64,000 bases of DNA, taken from assembly GCF_018350175.1 (NCBI RefSeq), contig NC_058372.1, forward strand, positions 3,720,001 through 3,784,000, in the 5' to 3' direction. Numbering within the stretch: position 1 is the stretch's first letter; the number at the start of each line of letters is the position of its first letter. Both the position numbers and the translations under genes were made by a program. The DNA comes from Felis catus. Lineage: Eukaryota. Shown here piece by piece: positions 4,495 to 51,466 of this stretch. The notes below the pieces were generated by a model. The model did no database searches. It had not been told where the DNA came from and worked only from the letters and a program-made list of their open reading frames with translations.

Positions 4495-4521
4495 TTTGGG
4501 TTGGATCGNNNNNNNNNNNNN

Positions 4522-4902
4522 NNNNNNNNNNNNNNNNNNNNNNNNNNNNNNNNNNNNNNNNNNNNNNNNNNNNNNNNNNNNNNNNNNNNNNNNNNNNNNN
4601 NNNNNNNNNNNNNNNNNNNNNNNNNNNNNNNNNNNNNNNNNNNNNNNNNNNNNNNNNNNNNNNNNNNNNNNNNNNNNNNNNNNNNNNNNNNNNNNNNNNN
4701 NNNNNNNNNNNNNNNNNNNNNNNNNNNNNNNNNNNNNNNNNNNNNNNNNNNNNNNNNNNNNNNNNNNNNNNNNNNNNNNNNNNNNNNNNNNNNNNNNNNN
4801 NNNNNNNNNNNNNNNNNNNNNNNNNNNNNNNNNNNNNNNNNNNNNNNNNNNNNNNNNNNNNNNNNNNNNNNNNNNNNNNNNNNNNNNNNNNNNNNNNGGC
4901 AT
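4522..4902 (-). CDS. H2BC6: Replication-dependent histone H2B (CDS N-masked; end inferred from the 126-codon length; H2BC6/HIST1H2BE by synteny)
   Basis: ATG CC- (Met-Pro) at 4902, then 389 Ns, then a stem-loop; H2B-specific octamer upstream. H2B identity is strong; the paralog name rests only on gene order. Confidence 0.75.
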
Positions 4903-4959
4903 CTCAACTCCGCTTTCTTCCGAGTGAAGAGAAAATGGAGTCCGCGCCAGGATCCCGCC

Positions 4960-5048
4960 TATTTGTAGTCAGCGGTATGCAAATGAGGAATGCGTTTCGC
5001 GGCCTGTGATTCGCTGACTCGTCGTGTGACCTGCCTGCACATGATTGG
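4960..5048 (-). promoter_or_regulatory. H2B promoter: TATA variant, octamer, CCAAT
   Basis: Minus strand TACAAATA (4960-4967), CCTCATTTGCAT with octamer at 4977-4984, CCAAT at 5044-5048. Confidence 0.85.
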
Positions 5049-5419
5049 CTCCAGCTCTACGGTCCCATTGGACGTATTCCTGAGAGCAGTTTCCCCCATT
5101 CAGGCAGGCTTCTCAACCTATTTGATAACAAGTTCAGACTACTTTATGAACATCCAGATTACTTTGGTGATTAATTTTAGAAAGTAGAAGCTCTCCCTTG
5201 TGTTTTGAATTGCCAAAGAGACAGTAGTCAGGTCGAAGGCACGTCTCCGATTTGCAACCCCCCTGTACGGTTCCTGGAAAAGGCGTACCTTTGCATTTAA
5301 ATCCGGGTTCTAGACCAGTGAGAGAGAGGTGAAGACGCTGCCAGCCCAATGGGGAACTCTGGGCACACTGTCTATCACAGAAATTCCTGATTGGGTCAAA
5401 TGACCAGGCCGTTGACAGC

Positions 5420-9869: not shown

Positions 9870-11700
9870 TTACTATGAATACACTTAACCAAGGAGGTGA
9901 AGAATTTGTACTCTGAAAACTATAAACATTGATGAAGAAATTGAAGATAACACATACAGTGGAAATACATTTCATAAATTACGTGCTCATGAATTGGAGG
10001 AATTAATATTGTTAAAATGTCCATACTACTCAAAGTAATCTACAGAGTCACTGCAATTCTTGACAAAGTACTAACAGTATTTTCCACAGAACTGGGATAA
10101 TCTTAAAATCTGTATGAAACCACCAAAGACCTCAAGTAGCCAAAGCAATCTTCAGAAAGAGGAACAAAGTTGAAAGTGTCATAATCCCAGATTTCAAGAT
10201 ACACTACAAAGCTATAATAATCAAAACAATATGGTAATGGCACAAAAATGGGCAGATAGATCAATGGACTGGATAGAGAGCTCAGAAATAAGCCAACTGT
10301 TATGGTCAATTAATCTATGCCAAAGAAGGCAGGCATACACAATGGGGAAAAGACTCTTCAATAAAGGGTGTTGGGAAAACTGGACAGCTATGTGCAAAAT
10401 AATGAAACTGGACTGCTTTCCTACATCATATACAAAAATAAACTCAAAATGGATTATAGACCTAAATGTGAGACCTGAAACTATAAAACTCTTAGAAGAA
10501 AACACAGGCAATAATCTCTTTAACAATCTCTGTTTGCCTTAGCAACCTTTTTCTAGCATTTCTCTGCAGGCCAGGGAAACAAAAGCAAAAATAAACTATT
10601 GGGACTACACCTATATCAAAGGCTTTTCACAGAGAAGGTAACCAACAACAAAATGAAAAGGCAACCTCCTGAATGGGAGAAGATATTTGCAAATGATATT
10701 TCCAATAACGTGTTAATATCCAAATCATAGACGAAGAACTTATACAACTCAACATCAAGAATAACAAGATTTTAAAATGGGTAGGTGATGTGTATNNNNN
10801 NNNNNNNNNNNNNNNNNNNNNNNNNNNNNNNNNNNNNNNNNNNNNNNNNNNNNNNNNNNNNNNNNNNNNNNNNNNNNNNNNNNNNNNNNNNNNNNNNNNN
10901 NNNNNNNNNNNNNNNNNNNNNNNNNNNNNNNNNNNNNNNNNNNNNNNNNNNNNNNNNNNNNNNATGTGGAGAAAAATGAACCCTCATGTTTTGTTGGCGG
11001 GAATGCAAATTGGTACAGACACTGTGAAAAACAGCGTGGAGTTTCCTCAAAAACTTAAAAATGGAAATACCAGAGAGTAGAGTAATTTCACTACTGGGTA
11101 TTTATCCCAGAAAACAAAAACACTGATTAGAAAAGATATATATCCCCCCTATGTTCCTTTTAGTATTATTTACAATATCCAAGATACGGAAGCATCGTAA
11201 GTGTCCGTCAGTGATGAATGGATAAAGATGTGGAGTGTGTCTATCTGTGTGGAGTATGTCCAGTCCATCATGGAATATCACTCAGCCATAAAAAAGAATG
11301 AGATCTTGCCATTTGTGACAACACGATGGATGGATGGGCCTCGAGAGTATTATGCTAAGTGAAATGAATCAGACAGAGAAAGACAAATGCAGTACGATTT
11401 CACTTATAGGTGAATCTAAACAACAAAACAGACAAAAAAGCAGGAATAGGCCCATAAATACAGAGAACAAACTGATGGTTGCCAGGGGGAGAAGGGTGAG
11501 GGGATGGGCAAAATGGGTGAAGGAGAGTAGGAGGAACAAGCTTCCAGTTGCGCAATAAATACGTCAGGGGCATGACAGGTACGCCATAGGGAATGTAGTC
11601 AATGGAAGTATAATGTAATAGCGTTGTGTGGTGACAGACGGTAGCGACACTTGTGGTCAACACAGTATAATGTACAGACTTGGCAAATCACTATGTTAAA
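9870..11700 (+). mobile_element. L1 3' part (ORF2 end plus 3' UTR), carnivore L1_Carn/L1MA-type
   Basis: ORF 10231-10542 translates to L1 ORF2-like text ([20 protein letters not shown]...[25 protein letters not shown]); typical 3' UTR; internal 168-nt N gap. Confidence 0.92.
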
Positions 11701-22405: not shown

Positions 22406-23910
22406 CCCCCTTTTTCTTTTAAAAGTTATTAAAGTGAGCCACTTGAAATCTGTATCTGTCAATTTCCTTTTACTCTGTTTATTTCCCTGCTCTTATTCTG
22501 GGTCACAGTGTCTTGTTGAATAATGTGCTAATGTCCTGTACGAAGCCTCTCGTTCCTTTCCTTCCAGGTGTCCTATGCGGGGATTTGTTGAGGCCCACAA
22601 CGAAGCTCATTCCCCCAGAGAGGATTTGCCTTTGCATTATCCAGGTGCTCAGGGGCACAAAGCCAGCTTGGGCTTAATCCCTAAATTAATTCTCAACCTG
22701 GGTGTTTGAATCCCTGTGATACTGACGCCAGAAACCAATGGCTAGTAGTCCAGATTGCCGGTGGCAGAATCTACCTGGCTCAGCACCAAGGCTCGGGGCA
22801 CCCTCTTCCTTGCCATCGTCCGTGGCGAGTGTGGGTCTGTGTGCATGTGTGTGTGTCTGTGTGTGTGCCCGTTTCTAGCTCACCTTCTACCCTGAGGATG
22901 TGACCCGGCAGGTGCGTCAGCGTCACCAGGAAAGATTTCTCATCAGGTTTCTTGGCGAATAATAAAGAAAGTCTACATTTTCCTCGCTCCCCAGCAGCTG
23001 AAACCCTTCAGGCCAGCGAAGCTTGTGCAACAGAAACCGCTGCCTGCCCGAAAGGCTTTCCTTCCCTTCCAACCTCCACTCCGGCCTCACCTCAAGGGCA
23101 CGCCAGGGAAGCGGCCAGGGTGCTGAGAAGGGGGCCTCGGTCCCGGGGGGATCCATCGCCTCATCACAGTCACACACCTGATGGGACTGCGTAGTGGGCC
23201 TGTGTCTCGTGGCCCAGAGGACTTTACAGCTGAATGCTTCCCAGAGACTGTAAGCGAAATAGGACTTCCTAGGACAGAGGCGACAGTAACTGACAGGACT
23301 GGAAGGCCTCTCAGAGCCCGGACACGTTCCCTTCCGGTCCCGCTGCGACTTTTGGATACAGTATAGACTCTGCCACCCTTCTCCCCCAGAGAGGCCCCCT
23401 CCCTGGCCGGCTGCTCAGAGCAAGCAGATATGGGAGCAGCTGCAAGGCCGGCCGACCAGAAAAGCCCACGTACATTTACCGGACGCTCCCACGGCCTTCG
23501 GCTGTTTTCAGTATCACCTCCATACATTAAAAAGGAAAAGAAAAAAAAAGGTGAGGAGAACAAAGTTTTCAGAGCAGGCTCCTTTGTGCTCTGGGTAAGC
23601 TCCTTATCAACTGCCTCAACAACGTGACGATCAATTTGGAGCCCGGCCCACGGAACCAGGAGTTGTACACTTGCAATGGCGTTCCATTTAAAATTAAGGT
23701 CTAGTTTGGTGAAACCGAAGGAATAATGGATGTAGAGGATCGTTGTTTATGGTGAGCACGCAATTTATACTGTAGGTGTTACTTGCAGAGTAACTTGAAA
23801 ATACTTTCTACTCAGCCCTAACCAAAAATTGAGTCGTGCTAGGATTACCAGATCCCCGAAAACAGCTTCCGTAATGAAAGGGTTACACCTCATTTGTTGA
23901 AAACATGCAT

Positions 23911-23926: not shown

Positions 23927-23962
23927 TTTGGGGTTGGGTAAGGGGGCGCTNNNNNNNNNNNN

Positions 23963-24343
23963 NNNNNNNNNNNNNNNNNNNNNNNNNNNNNNNNNNNNNN
24001 NNNNNNNNNNNNNNNNNNNNNNNNNNNNNNNNNNNNNNNNNNNNNNNNNNNNNNNNNNNNNNNNNNNNNNNNNNNNNNNNNNNNNNNNNNNNNNNNNNNN
24101 NNNNNNNNNNNNNNNNNNNNNNNNNNNNNNNNNNNNNNNNNNNNNNNNNNNNNNNNNNNNNNNNNNNNNNNNNNNNNNNNNNNNNNNNNNNNNNNNNNNN
24201 NNNNNNNNNNNNNNNNNNNNNNNNNNNNNNNNNNNNNNNNNNNNNNNNNNNNNNNNNNNNNNNNNNNNNNNNNNNNNNNNNNNNNNNNNNNNNNNNNNNN
24301 NNNNNNNNNNCGGGGCCGGGGCGGATTTGGTGGGTTCAGGCAT
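23963..24343 (-). CDS. H2BC5: Histone H2B type 1-D (mostly N-masked; end inferred)
   Basis: Visible N-terminus MPEPTKSAPAP (Thr at position 5 is characteristic of H2BC5/HIST1H2BD as I recall it), position next to H1-4, stem-loop at the expected distance. Confidence 0.88.
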
Positions 24344-24410
24344 TGCGGCGTGAAGTTAATACGCTATAACTAAGAGCCGGGAAAATAACTGGCGGCACCA
24401 AAGCCACGTT

Positions 24411-24597
24411 TATTTATAGATGCGGTATTCAAATAAGGTTAGTAAGATTTCGTCCGCGATTGGATTAATTTTAGTGTGTCGTCACAAATGCGGATGTAAA
24501 AGATACTTGCAGGTCTAGCTTTTCATTGGCTGCTTCCTTACTTTGCTTCTAGCCAATCAGAAGGCTTAGAGTAGGCTGCCTAAAGCTACTATAAATA
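24411..24597. promoter_or_regulatory. Bidirectional H2B/H2A-type promoter
   Basis: Minus TATAAATA 24411-24418; octamer variant ATTTGAAT 24427-24434; CCAAT at 24459 and 24525 (minus) and 24553 (plus); plus TATAAATA 24590-24597. Confidence 0.85.
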
Positions 24598-24644
24598 AGC
24601 CTGTTAAAGAACTTGCGCCGTAGATTTCAGTCACTGAAACTTTT

Positions 24645-24860
24645 ACGGAGACATCCTCGCTTTCGGTTTATAGGTGTAGACCACTCCCTGCTGGCTAGTA
24701 TGGCTTCATGCTTGGAGTCTGGGGCCTGCACCAGTCGGTATCCGGCGCTTAGGATGCGTCAGGCTTTAGGCGGGGTAGTAAGTGGCGTTGGACCTAAGCC
24801 CATAGTCCTTCCCAGCTCGCCTCATGCAGTAGCAACCTGCTCTATTGCGCCGGGCTGGTC
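24645..24860 (+). pseudogene. Highly decayed histone H2A relic, the divergent partner of H2BC5
   Basis: In one frame, GVDHSLL...GACTSRYPA matches H2A G28,H31,L33,L34,G44,A45,Y50,A52 in register; VATC ~ LAIR (85-88); SIAPG ~ TIAQG (101-105). The H2A start codon and N-tail are missing. Confidence 0.72.
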
Positions 24861-25173
24861 AGGAGGTGAAACACCGTACGTACTGTGTACTAGCAAATGC
24901 CTAGGAAATACCGCTTCCCAGACTTCTGTTCTCACTTTCAACCCTGCCCGTCAGTGTGGGAGTAATTCACCACTGACAAACCTACTTGAGAAATAAGCTC
25001 GAGTTTGGGTCGTGGATAGGCTTCCGGGACCTTTACTGAAACCCCTGCACATACAAGTTTTTAAGGCGTGCACGCAAATAAGCCTTGCCAGGAGACGCCG
25101 CTCCGTGCTGGAGGGACCGCCCCACCGCGGTGGTGTCCTCCCTCCGGCCACGCCCCCCAAGGAACACAGTGCA

Positions 25174-25183
25174 ACAGCTCTTT
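25174..25183 (-). terminator. HDE of H1-4
   Basis: Minus strand AAAGAGCTGT, perfect consensus. Confidence 0.92.
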
Positions 25184-25200
25184 CGTTGAAGTCTGTGGGT

Positions 25201-25216
25201 GGCTCTGAAAAGAGCC
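25201..25216 (-). terminator. Histone stem-loop (H1-4)
   Basis: Minus strand CCCAAA-GGCTCTTTTCAGAGCC-ACCCA. Confidence 0.98.
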
Positions 25217-25257
25217 TTTGGGTTGTGTTGAGCTTCTAAGCAGTAGGCCAAAGAAAC

Positions 25258-25914
25258 TTATTTCTTCTTAGCTGCCTTCTTTGGCTTGGCTGCCTTGGGC
25301 TTGGCGGTCTTTGGCTTGGCCGCCTTGGGTTTCACGGCTTTGGCCTTCGCTGGGCTCTTAGGCGCCTTCTTGGCCTTGGCTGCTTTCGCTTTTTTCGGGC
25401 TCTTTGCCTTTTTGGCTCCTGCAGCCGCCGCGGGCTTCTTCGCCTTCTTTGGGGTCTTCTTGGCGCTCTTCTTGGGGGTGCTGGCCCCCGTCGCCTTCTT
25501 GGGTTTCTTGGCCGCCCCGGCAGCCTTCTTGGGCTTGGCCGCGCCCGCCTTCTTGGCTTTGGGCTTGGCCTCCCCGGACGCCGCCTTCTTGTTGAGCTTG
25601 AACGAGCCCGAGGCGCCGGTGCCCTTGGTCTGCACCAGGGTGCCCTTGCTCACCAGGCTCTTGAGGCCCAGCTTGATGCGGCTGTTGTTCTTCTCCACGT
25701 CGTAGCCGGCGGCCGCCAGCGCCTTCTTGAGCGCGGCCAGGGACACGCCGCTGCGCTCCTTGGAGGCGGCCACGGCCTTGGTGATGAGCTCGGACACCGG
25801 CGGCCCGGACGCCTTGCGCTTGGCGGCGCCTGCGGACTTGCGGGCCTTCTTCTTCACGGGCGTCTTCTCGGCGGGGGCCGGAGCGGCGGGCGCGGCGGGC
25901 GCGGTCTCGGACAT
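25258..25914 (-). CDS. H1-4: Linker histone H1.4 (H1e), 218 aa
   Basis: Complete [49 protein letters not shown]...KPKKAAKKK; globular domain and five S/TPxK sites. Confidence 0.96.
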
Positions 25915-29090: not shown

Positions 29091-30169
29091 GTTTACCAGA
29101 CTGTAGGTCTGAATAATCACTAGAGGTTGTGAAATCAATTTAGNNNNNNNNNNNNNNNNNNNNNNNNNNNNNNNNNNNNNNNNNNNNNNNNNNNNNNNNN
29201 NNNNNNNNNNNNNNNNNNNNNNNNNNNNNNNNNNNNNNNNNNNNNNNNNNNNNNNNNNNNNNNNNNNNNNNNNNNNNNNNNNNNNNNNNNNNNNNNNNNN
29301 NNNNNNNNNNNNNNNNNNNNNNNNNNNNNNNNNNNNNNNNNNNNNNNNNNNNNNNNNNNNNNNNNNNNNNNNNNNNNNNNNNNNNNNNNNNNNNNNNNNN
29401 NNNNNNNNNNNNNNTATCCAATACTAGTGCCCAATGCCTGTGGCTTCAGTTATGCACTCAGTTCTTTGACTGTGTGCTGATGCCTCCCATGTGAAACGTA
29501 TTTTTTGCTGTGTGGGATCATAGGCTAGAGTGGAAGGAGCCTTCCTCATGGAATTTCTTGAACTCATGAAGTATTCTCAAGTTTTTAATCTCTAATGAGC
29601 TAAAAAAAAGGGGGGGGATTTCCTGATACGGACTTTTTTTTAAGCCTCTAAAAAAAAACCCCAAGTGATGGACAATGGGGAGCATGTTGTGAATGGTGGC
29701 CACAATAGCAATTGTGGGAAGAGGCACAACAATATGATTTGCAGACAAGTTAAAGGCATAGGAAGCTTGTACTTGGTTCCTTTTACTCCATCGTTCTGGG
29801 TCCCAAGCACTTGACTCTGCACTTGGCTATTTTAATGTTGTCATGAGTGTTTTAGTGAAGACAGAGTTTGGGGATGAGGTGCTTTTTGCAGGACAAACGA
29901 GTCCTTCCCGAGTTTCTGCACAGGAGGTGTATTACGTACGCAAAGGATGTGGCACCGTGGACTGTGGTCACTGTGTGGATCACCTTTGGAACTCTGTCGG
30001 GACAGACTTCCCCTCTGTGGACTTTTAATAGGTACTCTATCTTAGCTTTTGGTGTAGAACATTTCTGGCAAATTTTTCGTAAAAGGACCTATATGTTACC
30101 TTACAAATTCTTATTCTTTCTATGTCATTCAACCATGTGTGGATTGCACACCATTCAATCCAAGTGTGG

Positions 30170-50217: not shown

Positions 50218-50233
50218 GGCTCTGAAAAGAGCC
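50218..50233 (-). terminator. Histone stem-loop (H2AC6) with HDE AAAGGAAGAGCT just downstream
   Basis: Minus strand CCCAAA-GGCTCTTTTCAGAGCC-CCCCA. Confidence 0.97.
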
Positions 50234-50276
50234 TTTGGGTATGAGAGCGCTTCCGGGAACTCAGAGGACTGCCAGA

Positions 50277-50708
<432 letters not shown>

Positions 50709-50756
50709 TCACTTGCCAAAAGAGAGCAAGCCGGGAAGTAGGTAAAACATCGCTGC

Positions 50757-50954
50757 TTTTATAGCCATTTCCTGGGGAGCAAACCCGGTTGCCTGATTGG
50801 CTAGTAACGAGTCTCAGTCAAGTAGCCAATAGAAAAGCTTTATTTCCATACCTCATTTGCATAGTTCTGCCCATGGATGACAGCCTCACGGCTGGTCTTC
50901 CAATGAACTAAGACGCGGTCTGCATCCTTCATTAGCATAAAAGCCCTATAAGTA
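50757..50954. promoter_or_regulatory. H2A/H2B bidirectional promoter
   Basis: Minus TATAAAA 50757-50763; CCAAT at 50796 (minus), 50826 and 50900; octamer ATTTGCAT 50855-50862; variant ATTAGCAT 50931-50938; plus TATAAGTA 50947-50954. Confidence 0.9.
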
Positions 50955-51007
50955 GCAGACATTCGCTTCCTGCTTTCACTCCACTTCTGGCGTTCTGAGG
51001 TTTTAAG

Positions 51008-51388
51008 ATGCCNNNNNNNNNNNNNNNNNNNNNNNNNNNNNNNNNNNNNNNNNNNNNNNNNNNNNNNNNNNNNNNNNNNNNNNNNNNNNNNNNNNNNNNN
51101 NNNNNNNNNNNNNNNNNNNNNNNNNNNNNNNNNNNNNNNNNNNNNNNNNNNNNNNNNNNNNNNNNNNNNNNNNNNNNNNNNNNNNNNNNNNNNNNNNNNN
51201 NNNNNNNNNNNNNNNNNNNNNNNNNNNNNNNNNNNNNNNNNNNNNNNNNNNNNNNNNNNNNNNNNNNNNNNNNNNNNNNNNNNNNNNNNNNNNNNNNNNN
51301 NNNNNNNNNNNNNNNNNNNNNNNNNNNNNNNNNNNNNNNNNNNNNNNNNNNNNNNNNNNNNNNNNNNNNNNNNNNNNNNNNNNNNNNN
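51008..51388 (+). CDS. H2BC4: Histone H2B (N-masked; end inferred; H2BC4/HIST1H2BC as divergent partner of H2AC6)
   Basis: ATG CC- at 51008, 388 Ns, stem-loop and HDE; head-to-head with H2AC6. Confidence 0.82.
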
Positions 51389-51424
51389 NNNNNNNNNNNN
51401 AGCGCCCTCTTACCCAACCCCAAA

Positions 51425-51466
51425 GGCTCTTTTCAGGGCCACCCACATGTCCACTAAGAGAGCTGT
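51425..51466 (+). terminator. Histone stem-loop (G-U variant) and HDE of H2BC4
   Basis: GGCTCTTTTCAGGGCC 51425-51440; AAGAGAGCTGT 51456-51466. Confidence 0.95.

Follow-up and report, generated by a model that had tools for sequence, protein, structure and literature searches.

The histone gene HIST1H2BD (H2BC5), which adjoins HIST1H1E, is unusual in its expression outside S phase; in differentiated tissues its mRNA is spliced and polyadenylated. Cow has kept the gene, and the mouse copy is a pseudogene (PMC5100578). Given this expression outside S phase and this conservation in cow, its promoter is therefore considered to be under selection. In the human cluster, the H2A pseudogenes H2AC2P, H2AC3P, H2AC5P, H2AC9P, and H2AC10P are listed (PMC9526256, Table 3), and no human H2A pseudogene is numbered there between H2AC6 and H2AC7. 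If these numbers follow map order, the position between H2AC6 and H2AC7 is where the partner of H2BC5 would fall. No H2A relic or divergent transcript at HIST1H2BD was found described in the literature that was searched.

Here, we describe an orphan H2B gene (ATG at 24343) that probably descends from a divergent H2A-H2B pair, with its full bidirectional promoter kept, its H2A partner gone, and a nearby 98-codon open reading frame (ORF) being incidental. The 64-kb stretch of DNA that was analysed (the window) contains a part of the mammalian major histone cluster. The orphan gene is H2BC5-like, lies on the minus strand, and starts with MPEPTKSAPAP...; its coding body is masked (23951-24310), and no H2A gene lies beside it. 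A linker histone gene, H1-4, is found at 25261-25914 on the minus strand (Pfam Linker_histone, 1.4e-23), which we take to be H1.4-like from its protein sequence. An intact divergent H2A(-)/H2B(+) pair, H2BC4/H2AC6, occupies 50233-51440, with the H2A ATG at 50669 and the middle of the H2A coding region masked. In addition, a second unpaired H2B gene, also masked, lies on the minus strand at 4509-4897, and the region upstream of it (4898-5100) carries a perfect octamer, ATGCAAAT, at 4979 and ATTGG boxes at 5044 and 5067. The gene order, H2B pair, H1-4, H2BC5, and next H2B, is presumably that of the human arrangement. A pattern scan for histone stem-loops returned four minus-strand positions, 4494, 23926 (the orphan H2B gene), 25216 (near the H1-4 3' end), and 50233, and one plus-strand position, 51425.

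Just downstream of the stem-loop of the orphan H2B gene lies the longest non-genic open stretch near the locus (23090-23746, minus strand; 219 codons), with a 146-residue ATG-initiated ORF at 23527 and a patch GC content of 0.53-0.60; in other mammals, the polyadenylated H2BC5 mRNA has its intron and an alternative 3' end in this region (PMC5100578). Between H1-4 and the H2A/H2B pair, 271 nt are masked (29144-29414), and the flanks of this stretch are unremarkable; (TG)n/(CA)n microsatellites at about 22100 and about 28145 appear as CVCVCV and THTHTH in the ORF translations. A masked stretch of 168 nt (10796-10963, within 10640-11120) lies apparently inside the 3' part of a LINE-1 element and not in a histone gene, to judge from its flanks.

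The first-pass annotation had described the H2B gene as apparently lacking an H2A partner and had placed a CCAAT box at 24553 and a TATA box, TATAAATA, at 24590 on its divergent side, and both boxes are present as read. On the H2B side, the TATA box (24411..24420, minus strand) carries a TTTATA at 24413 that aligns with the H2B-side TATA box of the intact pair at 50952. Just upstream of it, the octamer-like element ATTTGAAT (24429..24436, minus strand) matches the Oct-1 octamer at 7/8 positions and aligns with TATGCAAAT/TATGCTAAT of the window's two other H2B promoters; its function is presumably the one established for H2B promoters. These elements are followed by the H2B-proximal CCAAT box 1 (24459..24463, minus strand; ATTGG on the plus strand) and by a conserved promoter core (24494..24560), which contains a degenerate second octamer, ATGTAAAAG, CCAAT box 2 (ATTGG at 24525), and CCAAT box 3 (AGCCAATCAG, plus strand, with CCAAT at 24553-24557). 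The H2A-side TATA box (24590..24597, plus strand) stands 32 nt after the last CCAAT, a distance identical to that in the live H2A promoter.

The promoter of the H2BC4/H2AC6 pair has the same composition, namely an H2B TATA box, an octamer, two ATTGG boxes, AGCCAATCAG, and CTATAAA, in the same order and orientation. The five elements at 24413, 24459, 24525, 24553, and 24590 correspond to those at 50952, 50904, 50830, 50800, and 50763 of the pair, with spacings of 46, 66, 28, and 37 nt versus 48, 74, 30, and 37 nt, the first of which is the distance from the H2B TATA box to CCAAT box 1. The opposed TATA boxes are 177 nt apart, compared to 189 nt in the intact pair, and enclose the octamer and CCAAT boxes. 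The locus thus has the architecture of a bidirectional H2A-H2B promoter, in which some 180 nt containing octamer and CCAAT boxes separate two opposed TATA boxes, and places an H2A-type CCAAT/TATA promoter divergently from an H2B gene. The two promoters differ in the distal octamer, which is degenerate at the orphan gene (ATGTAAAAG versus ATGCAAATG). In contrast to the H2BC4/H2AC6 pair, no H2A gene follows the H2A-side TATA box; H1-4, which lies on the opposite strand, comes next, with its 3' end.

The spacer between the H2A-side TATA box and the 3' signals of H1-4 (24598..25190, plus strand; about 580-590 nt) has no detectable similarity to H2A. The first-pass annotation had reported three H2A-matching blocks in one reading frame of this spacer. 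Searches with the frame-1 translation (24595-24993) and the ATG-initiated ORF returned no histone family in Pfam and no H2A chain among 177,635 PDB sequences, both at E<=10; the only matches that the frame-1 translation drew, DUF131, PGRP, cytochrome bd, and an Fab (E 0.15-1.2), are noise. An H2A profile was built from 69 intronless H2A ORFs of environmental eukaryotes (metagenome contigs), fetched via a degenerate AGLQFPVGR pattern; none of these references is mammal-like or close to the window's mammalian H2A tails. With the HMMER filters off and Z=1, this profile gave no match in any plus-strand frame of 24595-25190 and only two matches, both with negative scores, on the minus strand. As controls, the 27-residue pieces of the window's own H2A were recovered by the same profile, the N-terminal one at 34.8 bits (7.8e-13) and the C-terminal one at 20.2 bits (2.4e-8), and the C-terminal piece was also found by Pfam Histone_H2A_C at 3.2e-11.

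Protein-level pairwise comparisons gave the same result. For the frame-1 translation against the 69 H2A proteins, the best Smith-Waterman score was 42, compared to 38.3 +/- 5.1 for shuffled sequences (p = 0.25), and the alignment behind it is the 'AIRN...' block of the earlier description. In a permissive tblastn search judged by 200 dinucleotide shuffles, the plus strand reached p = 0.28 and the minus strand p = 0.105. The minus-strand tblastn matches of H2A N-terminal tails at 25090-25158 were rejected as G/R-rich low complexity (p = 0.105, negative HMM scores). This segment, just downstream of the H1-4 3' signals, has the G/R-rich minus-strand translation GGRGRREDTTAVGR.... At the DNA level, comparison with the ends of the live H2AC6 gene, the central 226 nt of which are masked, gave p = 0.155 and 0.94 for the 169 nt of 5'UTR and N-terminus and the 146 nt of C-terminus and 3'UTR. 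Furthermore, 24600-25190 contains no repeat or paralogous spacer relative to the rest of the window (best E 2.1), and Rfam returned nothing for the spacer at E<=1.

These results indicate that the protein-level similarity to H2A (Pfam PF00125 / PF16211 or the profile) by which an H2A gene or pseudogene is identified is absent from the spacer. The three blocks are at the level of shuffled sequences, and the relic that HMMER and tBLASTn searches were expected to reveal does not appear. The same holds for the claimed retention of the H2A reading frame, which seemed unexpected only because the similarity behind it is at chance level. The human H2A pseudogenes lie in the same cluster and would share with this locus their origin, the loss of one member of a pair; unlike the spacer, they are recognisable as H2A by sequence (PMC9526256).

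The sensitivity of these searches was estimated by simulation, in which three H2A coding sequences were subjected to substitutions and indels and set in a shuffled spacer. Relics were detected in 60/60 cases at 0.2 substitutions/site, in 53/60 at 0.4, and in 15/60 at 0.6, with detection near zero beyond. Since detection extends to about 0.4 substitutions/site, a relic of moderate age is excluded. An H2A gene that has decayed in place beyond about 0.6 substitutions/site, at 24620-25170, would escape these searches, with the promoter alone kept by selection. Such a history leaves the function the same as in the reading that we prefer, and only the history differs, decay taking the place of deletion.

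Several features are compatible with decay in place. The distance from the TATA box to the downstream element of H1-4 is about 580 nt, and in the live H2A gene the TATA box and the stem-loop are separated by 545 nt, a likeness that would fit decay in place, although it has no statistical weight. The GC content of the spacer (0.52-0.56) and its CpG observed/expected ratio (0.6-0.77) are above the local background (GC 0.33-0.43); this composition fits a place between two active, CpG-rich genes and would also fit an old GC-rich origin. In addition, the spacer shares 11 identical bases, GCGCCGGGCTG, at 24847 with H2A codons 20-23, in a frame other than that of the 98-codon ORF. As a candidate relic in a second frame ('RRAGQEVKHR'), this identity was rejected, since its alignment is at shuffle level (p = 0.155), like all the other similarity measures, and the HMM did not return it. 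The mammalian neutral rate is near 2e-9 per site per year by our own estimate, at which more than 0.6 substitutions/site would take well over 200 My, and indels are unlikely to have spared the length over such a time. The CpG content has also not collapsed, unlike that of old pseudogenes. We therefore regard decay in place as an unlikely history, albeit one that retains some weight.

A different explanation would be that an H2A partner never existed, and that the plus-strand CCAAT box and TATAAATA arose by chance or by convergence in the AT-rich region upstream of the H2B gene. Such motifs are frequent, as the whole 64-kb window has 66 copies of TATAAA and 100 of CCAAT, both strands counted, and the local GC content upstream of the H2B gene is 0.38-0.45. 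However, the five elements are colinear with those of the intact pair at near-identical spacings, with an identical CCAAT-to-TATA distance and with AGCCAATCAG and CTATAAA common to both promoters. In a blastn comparison with both regions in the H2B-to-H2A orientation, the upstream region of the orphan gene matched the intergenic region of the intact H2BC4/H2AC6 pair at 48/70 identities (E 3e-4), and the 70 columns span the second octamer, the ATTGG box, and AGCCAATCAG. Local alignment to the same intergenic region scored 20, compared to 9.6 +/- 1.3 for shuffled sequences, and none of 500 shuffles (0/500) reached 20. When both strands of the 64 kb were scanned for CCAAT-N(28-36)-TATAAA, only two sites were found, at 24553 (plus strand) and 50800 (minus strand), both with a spacing of N32. 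An origin of these motifs by chance or convergence is thus highly improbable. The geometry, the blastn match, and the shuffles all agree with one of the alternatives raised in the first-pass annotation, a promoter kept for H2BC5 with a possible antisense RNA as its product, in that the H2A-type promoter half has been kept beside an orphan H2B gene.

When the two promoters are aligned, the elements themselves are identical, and the 30-nt spacer that separates the CCAAT box from the H2A-side TATA box is not conserved. Identical elements around a diverged spacer indicate a probable constraint on the elements rather than recent common descent. For the second orphan H2B gene (4509-4897), no plus-strand CCAAT/TATA composite was found on the H2A side, and the octamer and two ATTGG boxes have been kept. 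This second gene has lost the H2A-side composite, and retention of the composite beside the H2BC5-like gene is therefore not automatic.

The 98-codon ORF (MASCLESGACTSR..., 24700..24996, plus strand, 98 codons plus stop) is judged to be incidental. As had been described, the first ATG after the TATA box lies at 24700 in the context agtATGg and opens 98 stop-free codons to 24996. This position is 110 nt from the TATA box, with no ATG in between, and the frame has no stop for 133 codons, counted from 24595. The pattern scan found no histone stem-loop on the plus strand past 24996, and H1-4, on the minus strand, converges on the ORF with its 3' end, both as previously noted. In the window, 24 ATG-initiated ORFs have at least 98 codons, of which only H1-4 is a gene and the one at 24700 is the shortest, and 25 stop-free stretches have at least 133 codons. 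The chance of at least 98 codons for one given ATG is 1.6% window-wide and 3.1% at similar GC content, and an ORF of at least 98 codons occurs in 3-5/200 shuffles. The length of the ORF is thus nominally uncommon per ATG, but not after selection by a scan.

Each component of a coding signature, namely codon-position bias, relatives, and a confident fold, was absent from the 98-codon ORF. The GC contents at the three codon positions (GC1/GC2/GC3) are 0.54/0.61/0.47, so that GC3 is the lowest of the three and far from its values in the histone genes, 0.89 for H1-4 and 0.83 for the pieces of H2A. A word-based protein search with the 127-residue frame against 5.8 billion proteins found no relatives. 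The ESM Atlas returned no usable match, and the ESM recognition score of the ORF was 1341, a value also seen for shuffled sequences, compared to the 2300 that 91% of real families attain. The AlphaFold model of the ORF has a mean pLDDT of 45.9 and consists of one short helix and three strands, without a histone fold. Although the TATA box is followed by an ATG in a good Kozak context within an open frame and the per-ATG chance is low, the proposal of a recognisable, frame-kept H2A relic whose first ATG opens a translated, histone-derived neo-protein of 98 residues is barely credible, given the chance-level similarity to H2A in its frame, the codon composition, the missing relatives, the predicted strands, and the 24 comparable ORFs in the window. 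The ORF has no coding signal and is best explained as an accident of sequence with about 52% GC content.

These comparisons leave as the preferred reading the loss of H2A from a divergent pair with retention of the promoter. An ancestral divergent H2A-H2B pair would have given rise to the minus-strand, H2BC5-like H2B gene beside H1-4, and the promoter would have been kept whole, with the H2B TATA box, the octamer, the three CCAAT boxes, and the H2A-side TATA box. The H2A gene behind this TATA box would have been deleted, or would have decayed beyond about 0.6 substitutions/site, so as to leave no recognisable form. NF-Y/CCAAT modules act in both directions, and for this reason the CCAAT boxes, and perhaps the TATA box, may have been retained as serving the H2B gene. 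The putative activity of the TATA box, and the constraint on it, are read from comparison with a single paralogous promoter.

If the TATA box still fires, it would produce a divergent non-coding RNA starting near 24620, which would meet no stem-loop or poly(A) signal before running antisense into H1-4; on the plus strand, no AATAAA or ATTAAA occurs before 26893. The predicted product would be short and unspliced and would lack a dedicated 3' end signal, and in this it would resemble the promoter-upstream or divergent non-coding transcripts of active mammalian promoters. Unlike those transcripts, which arise from an unstructured CpG-island edge, it would start from a canonical TATA box and CCAAT box of a former gene.

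For the whole intergenic region from H2B to H1-4 (24311-25257), 92-100% of the sampled words occur in 14 small runs (27-579 million letters of contigs) that were guessed to be RNA; the word-sharing runs comprise 20 holders, which come from three closely related organisms and none of which is recorded as RNA. If these 14 runs truly are RNA, the spacer is transcribed. We give very little credence to the further proposal that the H2A-side TATA box is active, that a plus-strand RNA starts from about 24620, and that the ATG at 24700 is translated into a lineage-restricted protein of 98 residues. If true, this would be a de novo gene on an orphaned histone promoter half that converges on H1-4 and is either coupled to S phase or expressed together with H2BC5.

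Overall, the locus is a vestigial H2A-side promoter half, an ordinary vestige rather than a hidden gene, and has little weight beyond annotation. It also serves as a caution that in-register matches at about 30% identity picked by eye, and an ORF of about 100 codons in DNA of 52% GC content, are at chance level. For the histone cluster, it suggests that an unpaired H2B gene can keep a two-sided promoter long after the loss of H2A, whereas the window's other orphan H2B gene has lost that half, and it could serve as a natural test for a contribution of the TATA and CCAAT boxes of the H2A side to H2B expression.
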